Source: Mytilus californianus (Eukaryota). From it: a stretch of DNA of 64,000 nucleotides. The notes beneath the pieces are model-generated. The model saw nothing but the letters and a program-made list of their open reading frames with translations. It was not told where the DNA came from and searched no databases. The stretch is from the NCBI RefSeq assembly GCF_021869535.1, contig NW_026262593.1:54808001-54872000 (forward strand), read 5' to 3'. The translations under genes were made by a program, and so were the position numbers. Below are positions 29,205 to 38,885 of the stretch, one piece after another; the stretch's first letter is position 1, and each line of letters starts with the position of its first letter.

Positions 29205-29428
29205 TATATATATAAATATATATACAAGTCTAAATTGAAAACAACGTTCAAACCTATGATTGCGTTGGATAAAAACCGCAATTTTTATACGTGTGCACGC
29301 CAAACAAATTTCTTGTTAGAGGGGTCTAAATACAGCACAAACAACATTTTCCAAAAGACCAAAAAAGTGACAAAGTATATTTTAACCAAACGCATTTGAC
29401 TAACAGGTCGAACAACAAATGTTCTTAA
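29205..29428 (+). repeat. Left part of the (TA)n-anchored 540-bp family copy interrupted by the Naiad
   Basis: Ends gttcTTAA. The uninterrupted monomer reads gttcTTAAaccctgct (reverse complement of ~34598-34613), and the sequence resumes at 33901. Confidence 0.85.
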
Positions 29429-29734
29429 TTTTTTTAATTATGGGTTGTTTGCCTGTGAGAGAGCTTTCACATGTTTATATCTTTGTTCTTAATTGTCAAT
29501 TATATATTATGGTGTTTGGATGTATAAATACTCATCCACGCCTGCTATCTTTATTATTGCCCCTGCTATGGTTTTACTAAGATTTCTTACAATCTCTGTG
29601 TTTGCCCTGTGTTTCTTATATGTCAGTATTATAATACTTAAGTCTTTACGTCGGGCCTTTTATAACAGTTTTTGTAAAATTTCTTTTACTGCTTTGCCTA
29701 TTATTTCCTATTCCGTAATTGTGATCCTTATTCA

Positions 29735-32700
29735 TTGTTACAACCTCCGGTCTTTTTTTATTTTGCCTATACCCCCTTTTTAATTATCATTATTTTACGC
29801 AATGGAAAGAAAATTATTAACAACACAACTTCTAGGATATCCACGTGCTTAAACAAACGTATTTGTAATGCCTCTACAGCCAGATTGTTTAACAAAAATG
29901 CGCGTGGATATCCACAAATTTTCCCGTGCAATGCCAAAAAGTGACTAACCTGTTTTAGATTAACTTCACAAAATACTGTACGGTCAACAGTGAACGGAAG
30001 AGCTTTTTCGCTCTCCTTTTCCTGTGACATTACCTGAAAAACTCAAAACCTTATATATGTGGTAACTTGAACCCTATCTAAGTGTGGTATTCAATATGTG
30101 GGACAGACGGGACGAGCGTATTACAAAAGAAATCAAGAACTCCTTTACCGCTTTCGTAGACCTAAAAAATTCAAAAGTTTGATATATCAACATTTAGATA
30201 AGCACAATCACAATCTAAAATTCATTAAATTCCAACCACTTGAAACCGTTCAGAAAAAACCAGGAGAATCACACAAGCAATTTGAAAAATCACGTGAAGT
30301 TTGCGAATTATTTTGGATAAAAAGACTTCAAACAGCTTATCCTCTCGGTCTTAATGACAAAATATTAGGACAGGGGAACATAACTAAAACTTCAATCGAT
30401 GTCATTAATATTGTCGATAAACGACTTAAAAATAAAAGGTCTCATGGCAAACGCAAAAACCGTAATCAACGTATTATACATCGTATAAATTATACACTTG
30501 CTGATCTGTTATCTATAATAAAAAATAATGGCAGACATCAAGTATTATGCAAACTGGGTCAGATACCAATAAGTAAATCATATGCTATTTTTCTGGAGTG
30601 TGATACAATTTCTTTTTTTAGCCCAATGTATGAATACACCCGTATTATTACAGCCTTTTGTCATCATAGGCTATTTCCTAGTATCGATAAACCTGAAAAT
30701 CATAAACGGCATTTTCTTAAATTAAAATATATAAATAGAGGTATTGATTTTATTAACTTATCTAGTATATTCAATGACTCTACCATCCAAAGCCAAATAC
30801 CTCCATATTTTGATAATATAGAACCACCTATCATTTCGTATTCTTATAAAAAACCCAGCAGAAGTTTGATTTTCAATTATACGTCAGTTACATCAGACGT
30901 CAATATAGAAAATAATGTTCCTTCCACTTGAGATTTTGAAACATCTAGTTTTAGATATGATCCCTATGGTCATGTCCCCACAGGAGACCCCAACATCGTC
31001 GAAGACCGTGAGGTCATAACTGTTCTTAAGAAAGGACCGAAATATCTTCCTCCATCTAAAATAGATTGGAAACAGTGTCGTCAGATCATTAAAGACGCTC
31101 TGTCTGTCTACTGTAAAAATTGGTGTAAACGTGAAAAATCTGAAAAAAAATCTCTAGACAGTTATTTGAATAAAATTATGAATACTGTTAATATTCGTAT
31201 ATCTCATTTTGAAAACAATTCTGAAATTAGTAATAGGGTCCATGATATTCCCATTTCCAGAATAAAAAATAAACTCCAAGTACTCGCAAAGCGGTTTGTG
31301 TTCGTACCGGCAGACAAAGCAGCAAATAATGCAGTGATGGTGTGACGCATATACTACACAGAAGTTCTCGAAAACGAAATTACAAATTCATCTACATTCA
31401 GGTCCGTACGCTCCACAGAGAGTCAAATTGTAAACAAGCATATCACTGCCACTACCCAGCTTAAAGCCTCTTCCGAACATTTGAAAGTCCCTACTATGTA
31501 CTGGTTACCTAAATTGCACAAAAAACCATTTAAATTCCGTTTCATCTCCGCATCTAGTAAGTGTTCTACTACTAATCTATCAATGCTTCTAACTACCTCC
31601 CTTACTACTATCAAAGAACTTGTTATTAACTTTCGTAATAAAGCTTATGAAAATAATGGTATTAATTATTTTTGGAGTGTTAAAAATTCTTTAGAGGTTT
31701 TAGATAAAATACATGCTTTTGATGGTCCTTTTAATTCTGTTGACAGTTATGATTCTTCTACTCTCTATACTACACTTCCACACAATCTTATCAAGAAAAC
31801 GTTTTCATATTTAATTAAATGGTCTTTTCAAAAATCTCATTACAAATTTATTTGCTGTAACTCGTTTAAAGCCTTTTTCTGTAACGAAAAAAGGAAAGTA
31901 TGCTAGATACACTTACTGGAAATGTGAAGATATGATTGAAGCTTTAAATGTTCTCCTGGACAACATATATGTACGTTTCGGCGATAGAGTGTATCGACAA
32001 GTAGAAGGTATTTCTATGGGCACTAACTGCGCCCCTTTAATAGCAGATTTATTCCTGTATTGCTATGAATCTCAGTTTATGACCAAACTCAGTAAAGACA
32101 CGTCATTGTTACATTTGGTTGATACATTCAACAAACCTTCCGTTATCTAGATGATATTTTTTCGTTAAATAATCCAGAGTTCTCTAAATATACTACCAAA
32201 ATTTACCCAATAGAACTTACTTTAACTAAATCTAACATAAACAGCAGTAGTTGTCCTTTTCTGGATTTGGACATTTCAATCTCTAAAGGAAAACTCCATA
32301 CGAAAATTTACGACAAAAGAGACGATTTTTCATTCCCTATTGTTAATTTTCCTTTTTTACACGGCGATGTTCCTTTGGCTCCATCATACGGTGTTTATAT
32401 ATCCCAACTCGTTCGTTATGCCCGTGTGTGTAGTGATGTCATAGATTTTAACAAACGTAATCAATGCATCACTGGTAAATTATTAAATTAAGGATTTCGT
32501 TACCATAAATTACGTAAAACTTTTGCTAAGTTCTTTCATAGATACAAAGATTTGATTAGTAAATTTGGCTGTACTTGTAGAAAACTGATTAAAAACTGTA
32601 TTTCACATCTTAAATTTTACGGTAATATTGTTCTTAAAGCGCGGAAATCACTATGTGATCCGTGTAAACTCATCGAACCTTCAAACAAACTTATTAGTAA

Positions 32701-32794
32701 AGGTTATCTTACCAATGTTGTATTTACATCTTTGAATATAGTTTACATTGGCACTAATATCGATTTTGTCATCAGCAAATTAAAACATAACTAA
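29735..32794 (+). pseudogene. Naiad EN-RT polyprotein ORF with five in-frame TGA (putative Sec); this copy has two compensating frameshifts and one TAA
   Basis: One frame from 29735 to ~31885, broken only by TGA at 29942, 30035, 30068, 30929 and 31343. +1 A in an A-run at ~31885, -1 at ~32134, TAA (probably from CAA) at 32489, terminal TAA 32792-94. True start codon uncertain. Confidence 0.85.
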
Positions 32795-32937
32795 ATTTGT
32801 ATGTTTTTCAAGCGGGATGTATAAAGACACACCCACGTTCGTTTAGATCTATAAAGAGGTTAAACTCCTAACTATCCTACTGTCTGTCGATATATTTATT
32901 TTTGGCATTGCACTAGTCATGTCTTCTTTGTTTGTCC

Positions 32938-32980
32938 ATGACGTTAAAATACTAAATCCCTGGGATGTGTTTTAGTTGAT
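32938..32980 (+). promoter_or_regulatory. SECIS element (type II) in the Naiad 3' UTR
   Basis: ATGAC core (32938-42); 10-bp helix II gttaaaatac/gtgttttagt (32943-52/32967-76); unpaired AA (32954-55); ministem atcc/ggat with ctg loop; TGAT 3' core (32977-80), giving the U.U/G.A/A.G/C.U quartet. Confidence 0.8.
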
Positions 32981-33900
32981 TTTAGTCTCTGATGCATAAT
33001 TTTTTATTATTAATTGTTTTGGCTTTTAACTAGCTGTCAGTAACTACGAGTACTCTCAAATCGTACTTTCTTGTTTATTTGACCTGTTGATACTACTTGT
33101 ATTGCTTTTTTGTTATTTAATGTTATTCAGGGTTATATCTGGTCTATATGCTAGCTTTGATAAGTGTTTGGTATAACTATAAATTTTCACTTCGTACTAT
33201 GAACAAAATTATTTATTTTGTAAAAATATTTCCTTTCTCTATTAGTACTGTACACGTTTACCTAAAAAAAATATCTTCATTTACCTGAATTTAAAGTTAT
33301 TGCAAATGGCTGATATTTTTGTTCGAGCTTATTGTTTTTCTTTAATTGTTCAACATTTCTTACCGATATAACATGTTACTTTTATTATTCTTCCCTTAGT
33401 TTATTTATTTTGTATTTACATTGTGTCATAGGTCAAATTTATTTGTTCAGTGTATGTTCAATGGTGTTAATATGTCCTTTGATTGAGTTAAGCTATTTCA
33501 GTTGATATTTTATAGTGTGTATTTCTTTGCTGTGATGTTACACTATTGTTTCAGAAAAAGGGTTAAGGTTTGGTACCATTAAAACGTTTAAACCCGCTGC
33601 ATTTGTTTGCACCTGTCCTAAGTCAGGAATCTGATGTTCAGTAGTTGTCGTTTGTTGATGTGGTTCATAAGTGTTTTCTCCTATCTCGTTTTTTATATAG
33701 ATTAGACCGTTGGTTTTCCCGTTTGAATGGTTTTACACTAGTTATTTTTTTGGGGTCCTTTATAGCTTACTGGTCGGTGTGAGCCAAGGCTCCGTGTTGA
33801 AGACCGTACTGTGACCTATAATGGTTTACTTTTATAAATTTTGACTTGGATGGAGAGTTGTCTCATTGGCACTCATACCACATCTTTTTATATCTATTAA

Positions 33901-35355
33901 ACCCTGCTGACTGCCATTGGCGATTGCCAAATAAACGGATCACAAGGTGTAATAAATGGATCTTAATTATAAATTTAATACCAAACAGAAAACAATAAAC
34001 TTGCGGCAAAGATGGTATACCGCAAGCAAAGGTGCAAAGATATATATATATATATATATACATAAGAGGTTTAAGAACATCCGTTGTTCGACCTGCTAGT
34101 TAAATGCGTTTTGTTAAAATATACTTTTTCACTTTTTTGGTCTTTTGGAAAATGTTTGTGCTGAATTTAGACTCCTCTACCAAGAAATTTGTTGTGCATA
34201 CACACGTATAAAAATTGCGGTTTTTATCCAACGCAATCATAGGTTTGAACGTTGTTTTCAATTTAGACTTTGTTTATTTTTTCGTTTGGGCTTGTATTAT
34301 ATTTGCCTTCGGGTTTATATGATCCGTTCATCCTATTTCGACTCTTCAAAATTTAAGAGTCTATCCTAAATTGAGGTAAATTATATGGTCTTCCAAATAA
34401 TGTTTCGATTCCTAACATCACTGAAGAGACATTAATTGTCGAAATTCGGATATGGTGTACCAATTTTTGCACCTTATTTTTGTGGTATATCATCTTTTCC
34501 GCAAGTTTATTGTTTTCTGTTTGGTATTAAATGAAAAATTAAGATTCATTTTGTTACATCTGGTGATCCGTTTATTTGGCAATCGCCAATGGCAGTCAGC
34601 AGGGTTTAAGAACATCCGTTGTTCGACCTGCTAGTCAAATGCGTTTTGTTAAAATATACTTTTTCACTTTTTTGGTCTTTTGGAAAATGTTGTTTGTGCT
34701 GTATTTAGACCCCTCTACCAAGACATTTGTTTTGCATGCACACGTATAAAAATTGCGGTTTTTTATCCAACGCAATCATAGGTTTGAACGTTGTTTTCAA
34801 TTTAGACTTGTTTACATTTTTTCGTTTGGGCTTGTATTATATTTGCCTTCTGGTTTATATATGATCCGTTCATCCTATTTCGACTCTTCAAAATTCAAGA
34901 GTCTATCCTAAATTGAGGTAAATTTTATGGTCTTCCAAATACTGTTTCGATTCCTGACATCACTGAAGAGACATTAATTGTCGAAATCCGGATATGGTGT
35001 ACCAATTTATGCACCTTTTTTTTGCGGTATACCATCTTTTCCGCAAGTTTATTGTTTTCTGTTTGGTATTAAATTAATAGTTAAGATCCATTTTGTTACA
35101 TCTGGTGATCCGTTTATTTGGCAATCGCCAATGGCAGTCAGCAGGGTTTACGAACATCCGTTGTTCGACCTGCTAGTCAAATGCGTTTTGTTAAAATATA
35201 CTTTTTCACTTTTTTGGTCTTTCGGAAAATGTTGTTTGTGCTATATTTAGACCCCTCCACCAAGAAATTTGTTTTGCATGCACACGTATAAAAATTACGG
35301 TTTTTATCCAACGCAATCATAGGTTTGAACGTTGTTTTCAATTTAGACTTGTTTA
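33901..35355. repeat. Remainder of the forward 540-bp copy (33901-34039), a (TA)n run, then a reverse array of ~2.4 monomers (34065-35355) ending in (TA)n
   Basis: (aa/ac)gaacatccgttgttcgacctgctag recurs at 34073, 34608 and 35150 (periods 535 and 542). Confidence 0.85.
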
Positions 35356-38319: not shown

Positions 38320-38885
38320 CTATTAGTTGCATTTAGTCTTTGATGCATGATTTTTTTATTAGTTGTTAGTGGCTTTAAACTAGCTGTCAGTAACTGCGAG
38401 TACTCTCAGATCTGAACTTAGTGTCTTTTTGTTGTTGGGATATACAAGTACCCTCCACTTCCACTCTGTGTTTTTGTTATATGTATTTCTATTTGTATCC
38501 ATCTGATGAGTTAAGCCTTTTTCAACTGATTTTTATAGTTCGTTCTTATGTTGTACTGTTTCACTACTGTCCCAGGTTAGGGGGAGTGTTGGGATCCCGC
38601 TAACATGTTTAACCCCGCCACATTCTGTATGTATGTGCCTGTCCCAAGTCAGAAGCCTGTGATTCAGTGGTTGTCGTTTGTTAATGTGTTACATATTTGT
38701 TTTTCGTTCATGTTTTTTGTACATAAATTAGGCCGTTAGTTGTCTCGTTATAGCTAAATGTGCGGTATGGGCTTTGCTCATTTTTGAAGGCTGTACGATG
38801 ACCTATAGTTGTTAATTTCTGTGTCATTTGGTCTCTTGTGGAGAGTTATCTCATTGGCAATCATACCACATCTTCTTTTTTATAT
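38320..38885 (+). mobile_element. 5'-truncated copy of the Naiad-related 3' tail family
   Basis: ttagttgcatttagtctttgatgcat matches 32972-32997, aactagctgtcagtaactgcgagtactctca matches 33028-33058, and it ends ggagagttatctcattggcaatcataccacatcttctttt. Confidence 0.8.

Follow-up and report, generated by a model that had tools for sequence, protein, structure and literature searches.

A damaged Naiad-type element in the Mytilus californianus genome

We analysed a 64,000-nucleotide stretch of the Mytilus californianus genome, hereafter the window (NCBI RefSeq assembly GCF_021869535.1, contig NW_026262593.1, positions 54,808,001 to 54,872,000 of the forward strand), and focused on a copy of a Naiad-type Penelope-like element whose open reading frame (ORF) is crossed by five in-frame TGA codons, termed U1 to U5. 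Positions are given in window coordinates, and individual copies or individual codons were compared, with X placed at stops. The boundaries of the element (29424/29430 and 33898) were set by the alignment of 29 fetched genomic copies. Its main features, all on the plus strand, are listed below; in the sequence contexts U stands for the TGA codon.

29424-33898, plus strand: full-length damaged element copy, approximately 4.47 kb, aligned to other copies at 92-98% nucleotide identity
29789-32794, plus strand: family ORF of 1001 codons plus TAA, with GIY-YIG endonuclease, linker and reverse transcriptase (RT)
29789-29791, plus strand: start-codon position, ATT here through a private loss of ATG; ATG in 16 of 17 covering copies
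29927-29953, plus strand: zinc-knuckle-like motif CX4-U-xx-C (C NAKK U LT C), with its first Cys at 29927
29942-29944, plus strand: U1, context PCNAKK-U-LTC, second Cys of the CX4CxxC knuckle
30035-30037, plus strand: U2, context CDIT-U-KTQNLIY, Cys just before the GIY motif
30050-30103, plus strand: GIY-YIG core LIY...YVG (LIY...YVGQT), enclosing U3 and the second Cys of the CCHH motif (30083-30085)
30068-30070, plus strand: U3, context VVT-U-TLSKCGIQYVGQT, first Cys of the CCHH motif (U-TLSK-C...H..H)
30929-30931, plus strand: U4, context VPST-U-DF, first Cys of the linker CxC motif (30929-30937)
31313-31321, plus strand: DKA motif, within PADKAANN at 31307-31330
31343-31345, plus strand: U5, context DKAANNAVMV-U-RIYY, Cys 8 residues after DKA (the whole at 31313-31345)
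32144-32155, plus strand: RT catalytic YLDD motif, read in the family frame
32792-32794, plus strand: true stop TAA, present in 27 of 28 covering copies
32930-32993, plus strand: selenocysteine insertion sequence (SECIS) element, Rfam SECIS_1, 33.3 bits against a gathering threshold of 35, E = 7e-4

Besides the lost start codon, the window copy carries several lesions of its own. An extra A in the A-run at 31887-31892 shifts the frame by +1 nt and is absent from all 29 other copies; a 1-nt deletion near 32134, absent from 28 of the 29 other covering copies, restores the frame; and a CAA>TAA change at 32489-32491 was found in none of the 28 other covering copies. The first-pass annotation had taken the TAG at 31904-31906 as the end of the gene. 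This TAG is created by the private insertion, and the family ORF continues to the TAA at 32792-32794. At the other end of the ORF, the start 'MILRNGK' is kept in diverged families, and L032/L034, two of the related metagenome contigs described below, have an in-frame stop two codons upstream of it.

A DNA search of the Mytilus californianus genome with 29735-32800 returned 8010 first-look candidates. The 40 candidates that were scored showed 92-98% identity, and many were 5'-truncated. Among 37 distinct copies the median pairwise nucleotide divergence was 2.5% and the minimum 0.7%; such low divergence between the sequences points to a recent burst. The window copy is dead, and its lineage is recently active and present in high copy number.

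The family ORF has the features of the Naiad clade, namely an N-terminal GIY-YIG domain, a CxC linker and DKA in place of DKG. The GIY-YIG domain lies N-terminal to the RT within one ORF, collinear with the homologue P0091, for which Pfam gave a GIY-YIG match at residues 96-151 (22.7 bits, cut-off 22.6) and an RVT_1 match at residues 653-809 (E = 6e-4). Pfam searches with the seven inter-stop pieces of the window returned nothing meaningful. The unbroken RT piece of a sister copy matched RVT_1 at E = 0.02, below the cut-off, and a PDB sequence search with this piece gave no match at E <= 1.

Partial tandem (pseudo-LTR) arrangements were observed in two genomic copies, L002 and L006, which carry a 114-bp or 484-bp fragment of the 3' end just upstream of the 5' end, and one metagenome contig, L061, is a 4181-bp head-to-tail tandem. 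No upstream partial copy was found at the window copy.

Conservation of the five TGA codons among genomic copies

The first-pass annotation had placed three listed ORFs in one frame and described the gaps between them as interrupted by TGA alone, quoting five contexts. Translation of 29735-33100 reproduced the common frame and all five contexts. The frame 29789-31885 contains exactly five stops, all TGA (29942, 30035, 30068, 30929 and 31343), and no TAA or TAG occurs in frame from 29735 to 31903.

We read the codon at each site in the 37 distinct copies. TGA was kept at U1 in 19/20, at U2 in 18/21, at U3 in 20/22, at U4 in 32/33 and at U5 in 36/36 covering copies, which amounts to 125 of 132 codon observations. 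The exceptions (TTA, TAA, CGA, CCA and ATA) look like random decay, and TGT or TGC, a check proposed with the original prediction, was seen at no U site in these copies. The rate of loss at the U sites was 5.3%, compared to 3.8% expected from neutral decay at any codon. Loss so close to the neutral expectation indicates that the TGAs were already present in the source element and did not arise after insertion.

Stops at other codons had a different composition. At non-U codons the same copies carried private in-frame stops as 30 TAA, 11 TAG and 13 TGA, in agreement with the earlier expectation that random nonsense mutations in this AT-rich DNA should mostly give TAA or TAG. The chance that five of five stops are TGA is approximately 0.24^5 = 8e-4. 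The linker motif reads U-D-C in 32-33 of 33 copies. The 'DF' that had been reported after 30929 is real in the window copy, where a private TGT>TTT change at 30935-30937 replaces Cys by Phe (U-D-F), and is not the family state, since the 33 other copies all have TGT there.

Two trivial origins of the in-frame TGAs were rejected. An alternative nuclear code in which TGA is a sense codon everywhere does not agree with the codon usage of the ORF, where the other Cys are written TGT/TGC and Trp is written TGG, and where TGA is confined to conserved Cys columns. Errors of sequencing or assembly would not recur in dozens of genomic copies and also in metagenome contigs assembled independently.

The TGA codons stand at conserved cysteine positions

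The 277-residue piece that separates U3 from U4 was used in an exhaustive profile search, which retrieved full-length Cys-type relatives of 892-996 residues; these were aligned with MAFFT. Wherever a homologue covers one of the five TGA columns, its residue there is Cys (for U2, in 7/7 Cys-type homologues), and both columns of the linker CxC are Cys in all homologues. The alignment with Cys that the first-pass annotation had anticipated was thus borne out at all five sites, and its motif names were refined: 29942 falls on the second knuckle Cys, 30035 on the Cys before GIY, 30068 indeed on the first Cys of CCHH, 30929 specifically on the first Cys of the linker CxC, and 31343 on the Cys lying 8 residues after DKA.

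In the 699-codon segment there are 8 strictly conserved Cys columns, and 4 of them are TGA sites; U1 is missing from this strict count owing to the misalignment of one truncated homologue at that column. The chance that five random sites all fall within the 8 strict Cys columns of 699 codons is approximately 4e-11. Two of the Cys of the zinc-finger-like motifs of the endonuclease (CX2-5CxxC and CCHH) are replaced by TGA, and the other positions of these motifs align column for column. The Cys-type Naiads (P0091, P0110, P0114 and P0172) have the same domain order as the mussel family and share with it CX2-5CxxC, GIY-YIG with CCHH, the KR-rich region, CxC, DKA and YxDD; they differ in having Cys at all five sites where the mussel family has TGA.

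Related families in marine metagenomes exchange TGA with TGT

A word-indexed protein search retrieved mainly proteins of 277-278 residues, from marine and aquatic metagenomes and Logan assemblies, that correspond to the piece between two TGAs. The contigs of these proteins were fetched, and the codon opposite each U site was read, as listed below (identities to the mussel family at the amino acid level).

L032-L035, 89% identity: TGA at U1 to U5
L031, 66% identity: TGA at U1 to U4, TGT at U5; an extra TGA at the position of the window Cys 32429
L065/L066, 65% identity: TGA at U1 to U5; a sixth TGA at the first knuckle Cys (window 29927)
L036, 64% identity: U1 beyond the contig; TGA at U2 and U3, TGT at U4, TGA at U5
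L064, 64% identity: TGA at U1 to U4; U5 beyond the contig
L063, 41% identity: TGT at U1, TGA at U2 to U4; U5 beyond the contig
L061/L062, 39% identity: TGT at U1, TGA at U2 and U3, TGT at U4, TGA at U5

U2 was TGA in every external contig read there, and no stop other than TGA was found in L031, L032 or L036 within 928-940 aligned codons. Maximum-likelihood analysis of 13 sequences grouped all families with TGA in one clade (100/99), separate from six Cys-type Naiads. With midpoint rooting of these 13 sequences, the families with three TGAs are basal and those with five or six lie in the crown, which suggests an order of gain.

A second, very young Naiad family was also noticed in the Mytilus californianus genome, at C13:18889379-18899170 and many other places, with many identical-scoring copies. 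It shows 66-71% amino acid identity to the metagenome queries and forms head-to-tail arrays with a 4020-bp period; in the search alignments, from which alone it was read, 905-residue frames run through a single TGA. Its U3 and U5 sites are probably TGA, and its U4 site is probably Cys. On the L064 contig, a Tc1/mariner-type DDE_3 transposase gene (L064:3038-4063) adjoins the Naiad fragment, consistent with an origin of this contig from an animal genome.

Coding constraint continues past every TGA

Nei-Gojobori estimates were obtained for the window copy against metagenome contigs. Compared to L032, the successive segments after U1 gave ratios of non-synonymous to synonymous substitution rates (dN/dS) of 0.09, 0, 0.17, 0.36, 0.13, 0.08 and 0.15, and the whole sequence after U1 gave 0.166 at a dS of 0.27. 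The overall dN/dS against L031 was 0.087, with dS saturated, and the comparison with L036 gave proportions of non-synonymous and synonymous differences (pN and pS) of 0.205 and 0.80. Every TGA-bounded segment with a computable ratio was thus below 0.4. Within the genome, the subfamily represented by copies L017/L018 differed from at least 80% of the other copies by 56 synonymous and 22 non-synonymous codon changes. These sequence comparisons indicate purifying selection downstream of every TGA.

A conserved SECIS element follows the stop codon

Rfam searches of 29300-34100 on both strands (E <= 10) gave SECIS_1 as the single plausible match, in the 3' untranslated region (UTR). Within the element at 32930-32993, AUGA occupies 32938-32941 and the 3' GA occupies 32978-32979; helix II is 10 bp long, and the AAA at the apex is accompanied by a mini-stem. 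It starts 143 nt after the stop in the mussel family and 61-142 nt after it in relatives; in the distant L061/L062 it overlaps the end of the ORF. Elsewhere the scores were 38.4 bits (genomic copy L018), 33.0 bits (L031) and 28.4 bits (L032-L034). In the window copy a private AC>TT change at 32931-32932 weakens helix I, for which the other copies have GACU/AGUC. Because their sequences are nearly identical, the elements of the sister copies that do not reach the threshold are treated as just sub-threshold and putatively present, rather than absent.

The structure was examined further with RNAalifold on 6 sequences from 5 families. The consensus fold consists of helix I, an internal loop with invariant AUGA and 3' UGA, a 10-bp helix II, AAA and a 3-bp mini-stem, and 5 of its 18 pairs show compensatory double changes. 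The 3' UTRs of the SECIS-bearing families otherwise align poorly outside a few blocks. A simple SECIS scanner that demands at least 8 consecutive pairs missed L036 and L065, which have mismatches in helix II; these two were added by eye and with RNAalifold.

Host decoding machinery and transcription

Two genes for the selenocysteine (Sec) tRNA were found in the genome (79.6 and 77.0 bits, Rfam cut-off 47). At C154:27755505-27807263, 50 or more tRNA-like units are repeated in tandem every 728 bp; each reaches 42.8 bits, below the same tRNA-Sec cut-off of 47, and these are most likely genes for tRNAs with a long variable arm.

The 31-mers of the window copy were present at 55-62% in public runs of two organisms and at 37-38% in RNA runs labelled 'mollusc metagenome'. 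Two raw-read RNA runs were mapped to 29430-33898, with approximately 6% of run X23 used. In this run, which behaves as stranded, the ORF was covered 10-36x on one strand and at most 2x on the other; assuming the customary library orientation, the covered strand is sense RNA. At the lesions of the window copy the reads carry the family sequence: the A at 31887 was omitted in 12/16 reads and a T was inserted after 32134 in 28/38 and 11/20 reads. Reads joining 33898 to 29430 demonstrated that head-to-tail copies are transcribed. Among the best-supported differences listed between RNA reads and DNA, none fell on the TGA codons.

RNA depth over 33450-33898 was 10- to 100-fold above that of the ORF. 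Either this tail is common to far more abundant truncated or non-autonomous copies, or a separate RNA accumulates.

Selenocysteine decoding and the alternatives to it

We consider it highly probable that the 1001-codon ORF belongs to a transposing lineage in which five UGAs are read as Sec, served by one 3'-UTR SECIS together with the host's Sec machinery. The initial suggestion of a Naiad selenoprotein is accordingly supported by the conservation of the TGAs, their alignment with Cys, the exchange between TGA and TGT, the coding constraint, the SECIS and the tRNA-Sec genes. Transcription would probably start from tandem or pseudo-LTR arrangements and give one mRNA with the 1001-codon ORF; SECIS-bound factors would bring Sec-tRNA to each of the five UGAs, and translation would terminate at the UAA at 32792. 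Four Sec would replace Cys in the zinc-finger-like and CxC motifs of the endonuclease and linker, where the replaced cysteines are presumably metal-binding, and the fifth would replace a conserved Cys on the N-terminal side of the RT. From these data we infer that Sec, and not another residue, would be inserted at each UGA and that a full-length protein would be made. A possible benefit is that transposition may be coupled to selenium supply.

Several observations count against this interpretation. The SECIS of the window scores just below the gathering threshold (33.3 against 35), which only 1 of the 20 sister copies scanned exceeds. A single SECIS was detected, and the five UGAs lie up to 3 kb upstream of it; vertebrate selenoprotein P (SelenoP) uses two SECIS elements. 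The Pfam cut-offs are not reached by the RT or endonuclease pieces of the mussel family. All of the approximately 20 sampled full-length copies carry private lesions, in a sample picked by similarity to a damaged copy. RNA editing at the TGAs may also, formally, play a part.

The damage seen in every sampled copy is what would be expected if the TGAs were true nonsense mutations in a dead or non-autonomous lineage copied in trans by an intact Cys-coding Naiad. Other Naiad families do coexist in the genome, and TGA is the only stop one step from a Cys codon, so that an all-TGA pattern follows once the affected sites are Cys codons. This explanation leaves unaccounted for the low dN/dS after the TGAs (0.166 against L032 and 0.087 against L031 overall), the 56:22 synonymous bias within the genome, the persistence of the TGAs in families 39-66% identical, with no other stops in those read (L031 and L036), and the compensatory changes in the conserved SECIS. 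Further, five of about nine conserved Cys columns are TGA and no other kind of codon is. Truncation at codon 52 would not preserve approximately 950 constrained codons, and for practical purposes we therefore regard a dead or non-autonomous lineage as excluded, with a very small residual probability. In a second alternative, the UGAs would be read through as another residue, with the SECIS-like hairpin being incidental; a suppressor tRNA, near-cognate insertion of Cys or Trp, or programmed readthrough of a generic kind could be responsible. The marginal SECIS scores of most copies would fit such readthrough, and UGA-to-Cys miscoding is known in some selenoproteins under limiting selenium. However, the SECIS core (AUGA, AAA and GA) is invariant and its helices covary over five families in a 3' UTR that is otherwise strongly diverged; TGA occurs only at Cys columns and is exchanged only with TGT, the signature of a Sec/Cys pair; and five successive low-efficiency events would leave hardly any RT. 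Grade-A SECIS elements are present in the Naiads published from clams and spiders (PMC8557442). We consider non-Sec readthrough improbable, though it is the least improbable of the alternatives.

In a third scenario, the UGAs would act mainly as regulated terminators that yield short N-terminal or endonuclease-only products, with rare full-length protein at high Sec capacity, so that selenium would throttle transposition. Decoding of UGA as Sec is generally inefficient and position-dependent (Turanov 2013, Wen 1998, cited in PMC8557442), U4 and U5 lie at domain borders (after the endonuclease and linker, and at the entry to the RT), and the clade shows an increase from 3 to 6 UGAs. On the other hand, peptides terminated at U1-U3 would be only 51-93 residues long and without evident function, and the scenario refines Sec decoding rather than replacing it, since Sec insertion is still needed. 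As the principal role of the UGAs, regulated termination seems to us very unlikely, and decoding as Sec is retained as the explanation of the five codons.

A twister-like motif and neighbouring repeats

The 3' tail of the element contains a further putative structure.

33551-33634, plus strand: putative twister-like ribozyme motif, circularly permuted (P5-open), assigned from its layout and from compensatory changes across families

The motif is laid out as GGGU-UAAGG, a palindromic P1 region, UAA-ACCC-GC, a P3 hairpin and CCUG-UCCUAAGU-CAGG. Rfam gave no match for the window stretch 33551-33634, and sub-threshold matches for L031 (Twister-P5, 23.4 bits) and L036 (twister-P1, 22.4 bits). Homologous tail stretches were located at L031:3747-3815, L036:3137-3225 and L033:3761-3830. 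Across families the P1 region has the palindromes GGUACC, GGAUCC and GAGCGCUC, P2 occurs as GGGU/ACCC, GGGA/UCCC and GGGG/CCCC, the pseudoknot T1 as AGG/CCU and GGG/CCC, and the P3 hairpin in at least three complementary versions. P2, T1 and P3 are thus each preserved through compensatory changes, and self-cleavage is putative. No hammerhead match was found in 29300-34100 on either strand at E <= 10; Naiads have been described as lacking hammerheads, and twister is unmentioned in the 2021 paper (PMC8557442).

Naiads are described as preferring (TA)n microsatellites for insertion (Craig et al. 2021). Around the window copy, runs of (TA)n lie at about 29205-29230 (approximately 200 bp upstream) and 34040-34062 (approximately 140 bp downstream), and not at the ends of the copy. 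An unrelated repeat unit of approximately 185-250 bp flanks the copy in inverted orientation (29245-29428 and 34068-34251), with more units at 34542-34790 and 35084-35331, and also abuts the 3' end of the genomic copy L004; the Naiad copy seems to be nested in another repeat. A 3'-tail fragment of a related Naiad family, 73-86% identical to 32972-33889, lies at 38323-38878.

Comparison with published systems and significance

Naiads were defined by Craig et al. 2021, who reported four Sec-coding families in two clams and two spiders, with 3 UGAs in Naiad_Mmer, 3 in Naiad_Smim, 4 in Naiad_Sdum and 4 in Naiad_Scon (PMC8557442). Two UGA sites are common to the four, namely the Cys preceding GIY-YIG and the Cys that lies 8 residues after DKA; in addition, the clam families have UGA at the first CCHH Cys and the spider families at a knuckle Cys (PMC8557442). 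The mussel family was compared with these published families by their description in that paper. The clam families Naiad_Mmer (Mercenaria mercenaria) and Naiad_Scon (Sinonovacula constricta) are the closest in kind, being of the same clade and architecture, in a bivalve host, with a single 3'-UTR SECIS and with the U2, U3 and U5 sites in common. They differ in their venerid and pharid hosts and their 3-4 UGAs, compared to a mytilid host and five UGAs here; the mussel family also has Sec at the second Cys of the knuckle and, in the linker CxC, at the first Cys, a position not among the Sec sites of the paper. The distance of the SECIS from the stop also differs: it is 143 nt in the mussel family, and in the families of the paper the SECIS lies 1-21 nt beyond the stop or overlaps it.

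The spider families Naiad_Sdum and Naiad_Smim (Stegodyphus) have Sec in the CX2-5CxxC knuckle (at the first Cys, or at the first and second), before GIY and after DKA, and none in CCHH or CxC. Their host is an arthropod, and the authors infer an independent origin (PMC8557442). L065/L066 resemble Naiad_Sdum in having TGA at both knuckle Cys, yet they belong to the bivalve-type clade. The Naiad of Mytilus galloprovincialis was not marked as Sec-coding, and mussel Naiads were described with a 5-residue insert in the knuckle (PMC8557442); this insert is without counterpart in the Mytilus californianus family. Outside transposons, SelenoP offers the parallel of several UGAs in one ORF decoded with the help of a 3'-UTR SECIS. 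It is unrelated in protein and function, and its Sec lie mostly in a C-terminal transport tail, compared to conserved zinc-finger-like and RT-motif Cys positions here; the SelenoP of bivalves is especially Sec-rich (Baclaocos 2019, cited in PMC8557442). A full-text literature search found no later paper on Sec-coding transposons. The phenomenon has been known since 2021 in clams and spiders; new are the family, the mytilid host, the five Sec codons (six in a relative) and Sec in the CxC motif.

For the wider group, we lean slightly towards the view that bivalve Naiads are a radiating clade in which Sec progressively replaces conserved Cys, from 3 Sec in basal families (before GIY, first CCHH Cys and 8 residues after DKA) to 5 in the mussel family and 6 in a relative, with the CxC linker and a C-terminal Cys of the RT included and with reversions to Cys.

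These findings extend the Sec-Naiad trait to mytilid mussels, within a larger marine clade whose members turn up readily in ocean metagenomes. Between 3 and 6 Sec codons are present, and Sec and Cys have been exchanged repeatedly at defined, presumably metal-binding positions, including the Naiad-specific CxC. Repeat and gene annotation in bivalves will split such ORFs at each TGA, and public proteins hold just the 277-278-residue pieces. With thousands of young copies and sense transcripts, Mytilus is convenient for testing the decoding of several UGAs with a single SECIS, and dispersed SECIS elements borne by transposons are possible seeds of new selenoprotein genes, an idea that is testable in the same genus. 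If the view of a radiating clade is true, these would be the most Sec-rich proteins known outside SelenoP, with a single SECIS placed 1.6-3 kb downstream of their UGAs. Mytilus genomes would then hold thousands of scattered copies with a SECIS, which could offer a natural system for the study of processive Sec decoding, and these copies could be raw material for new host selenoproteins.

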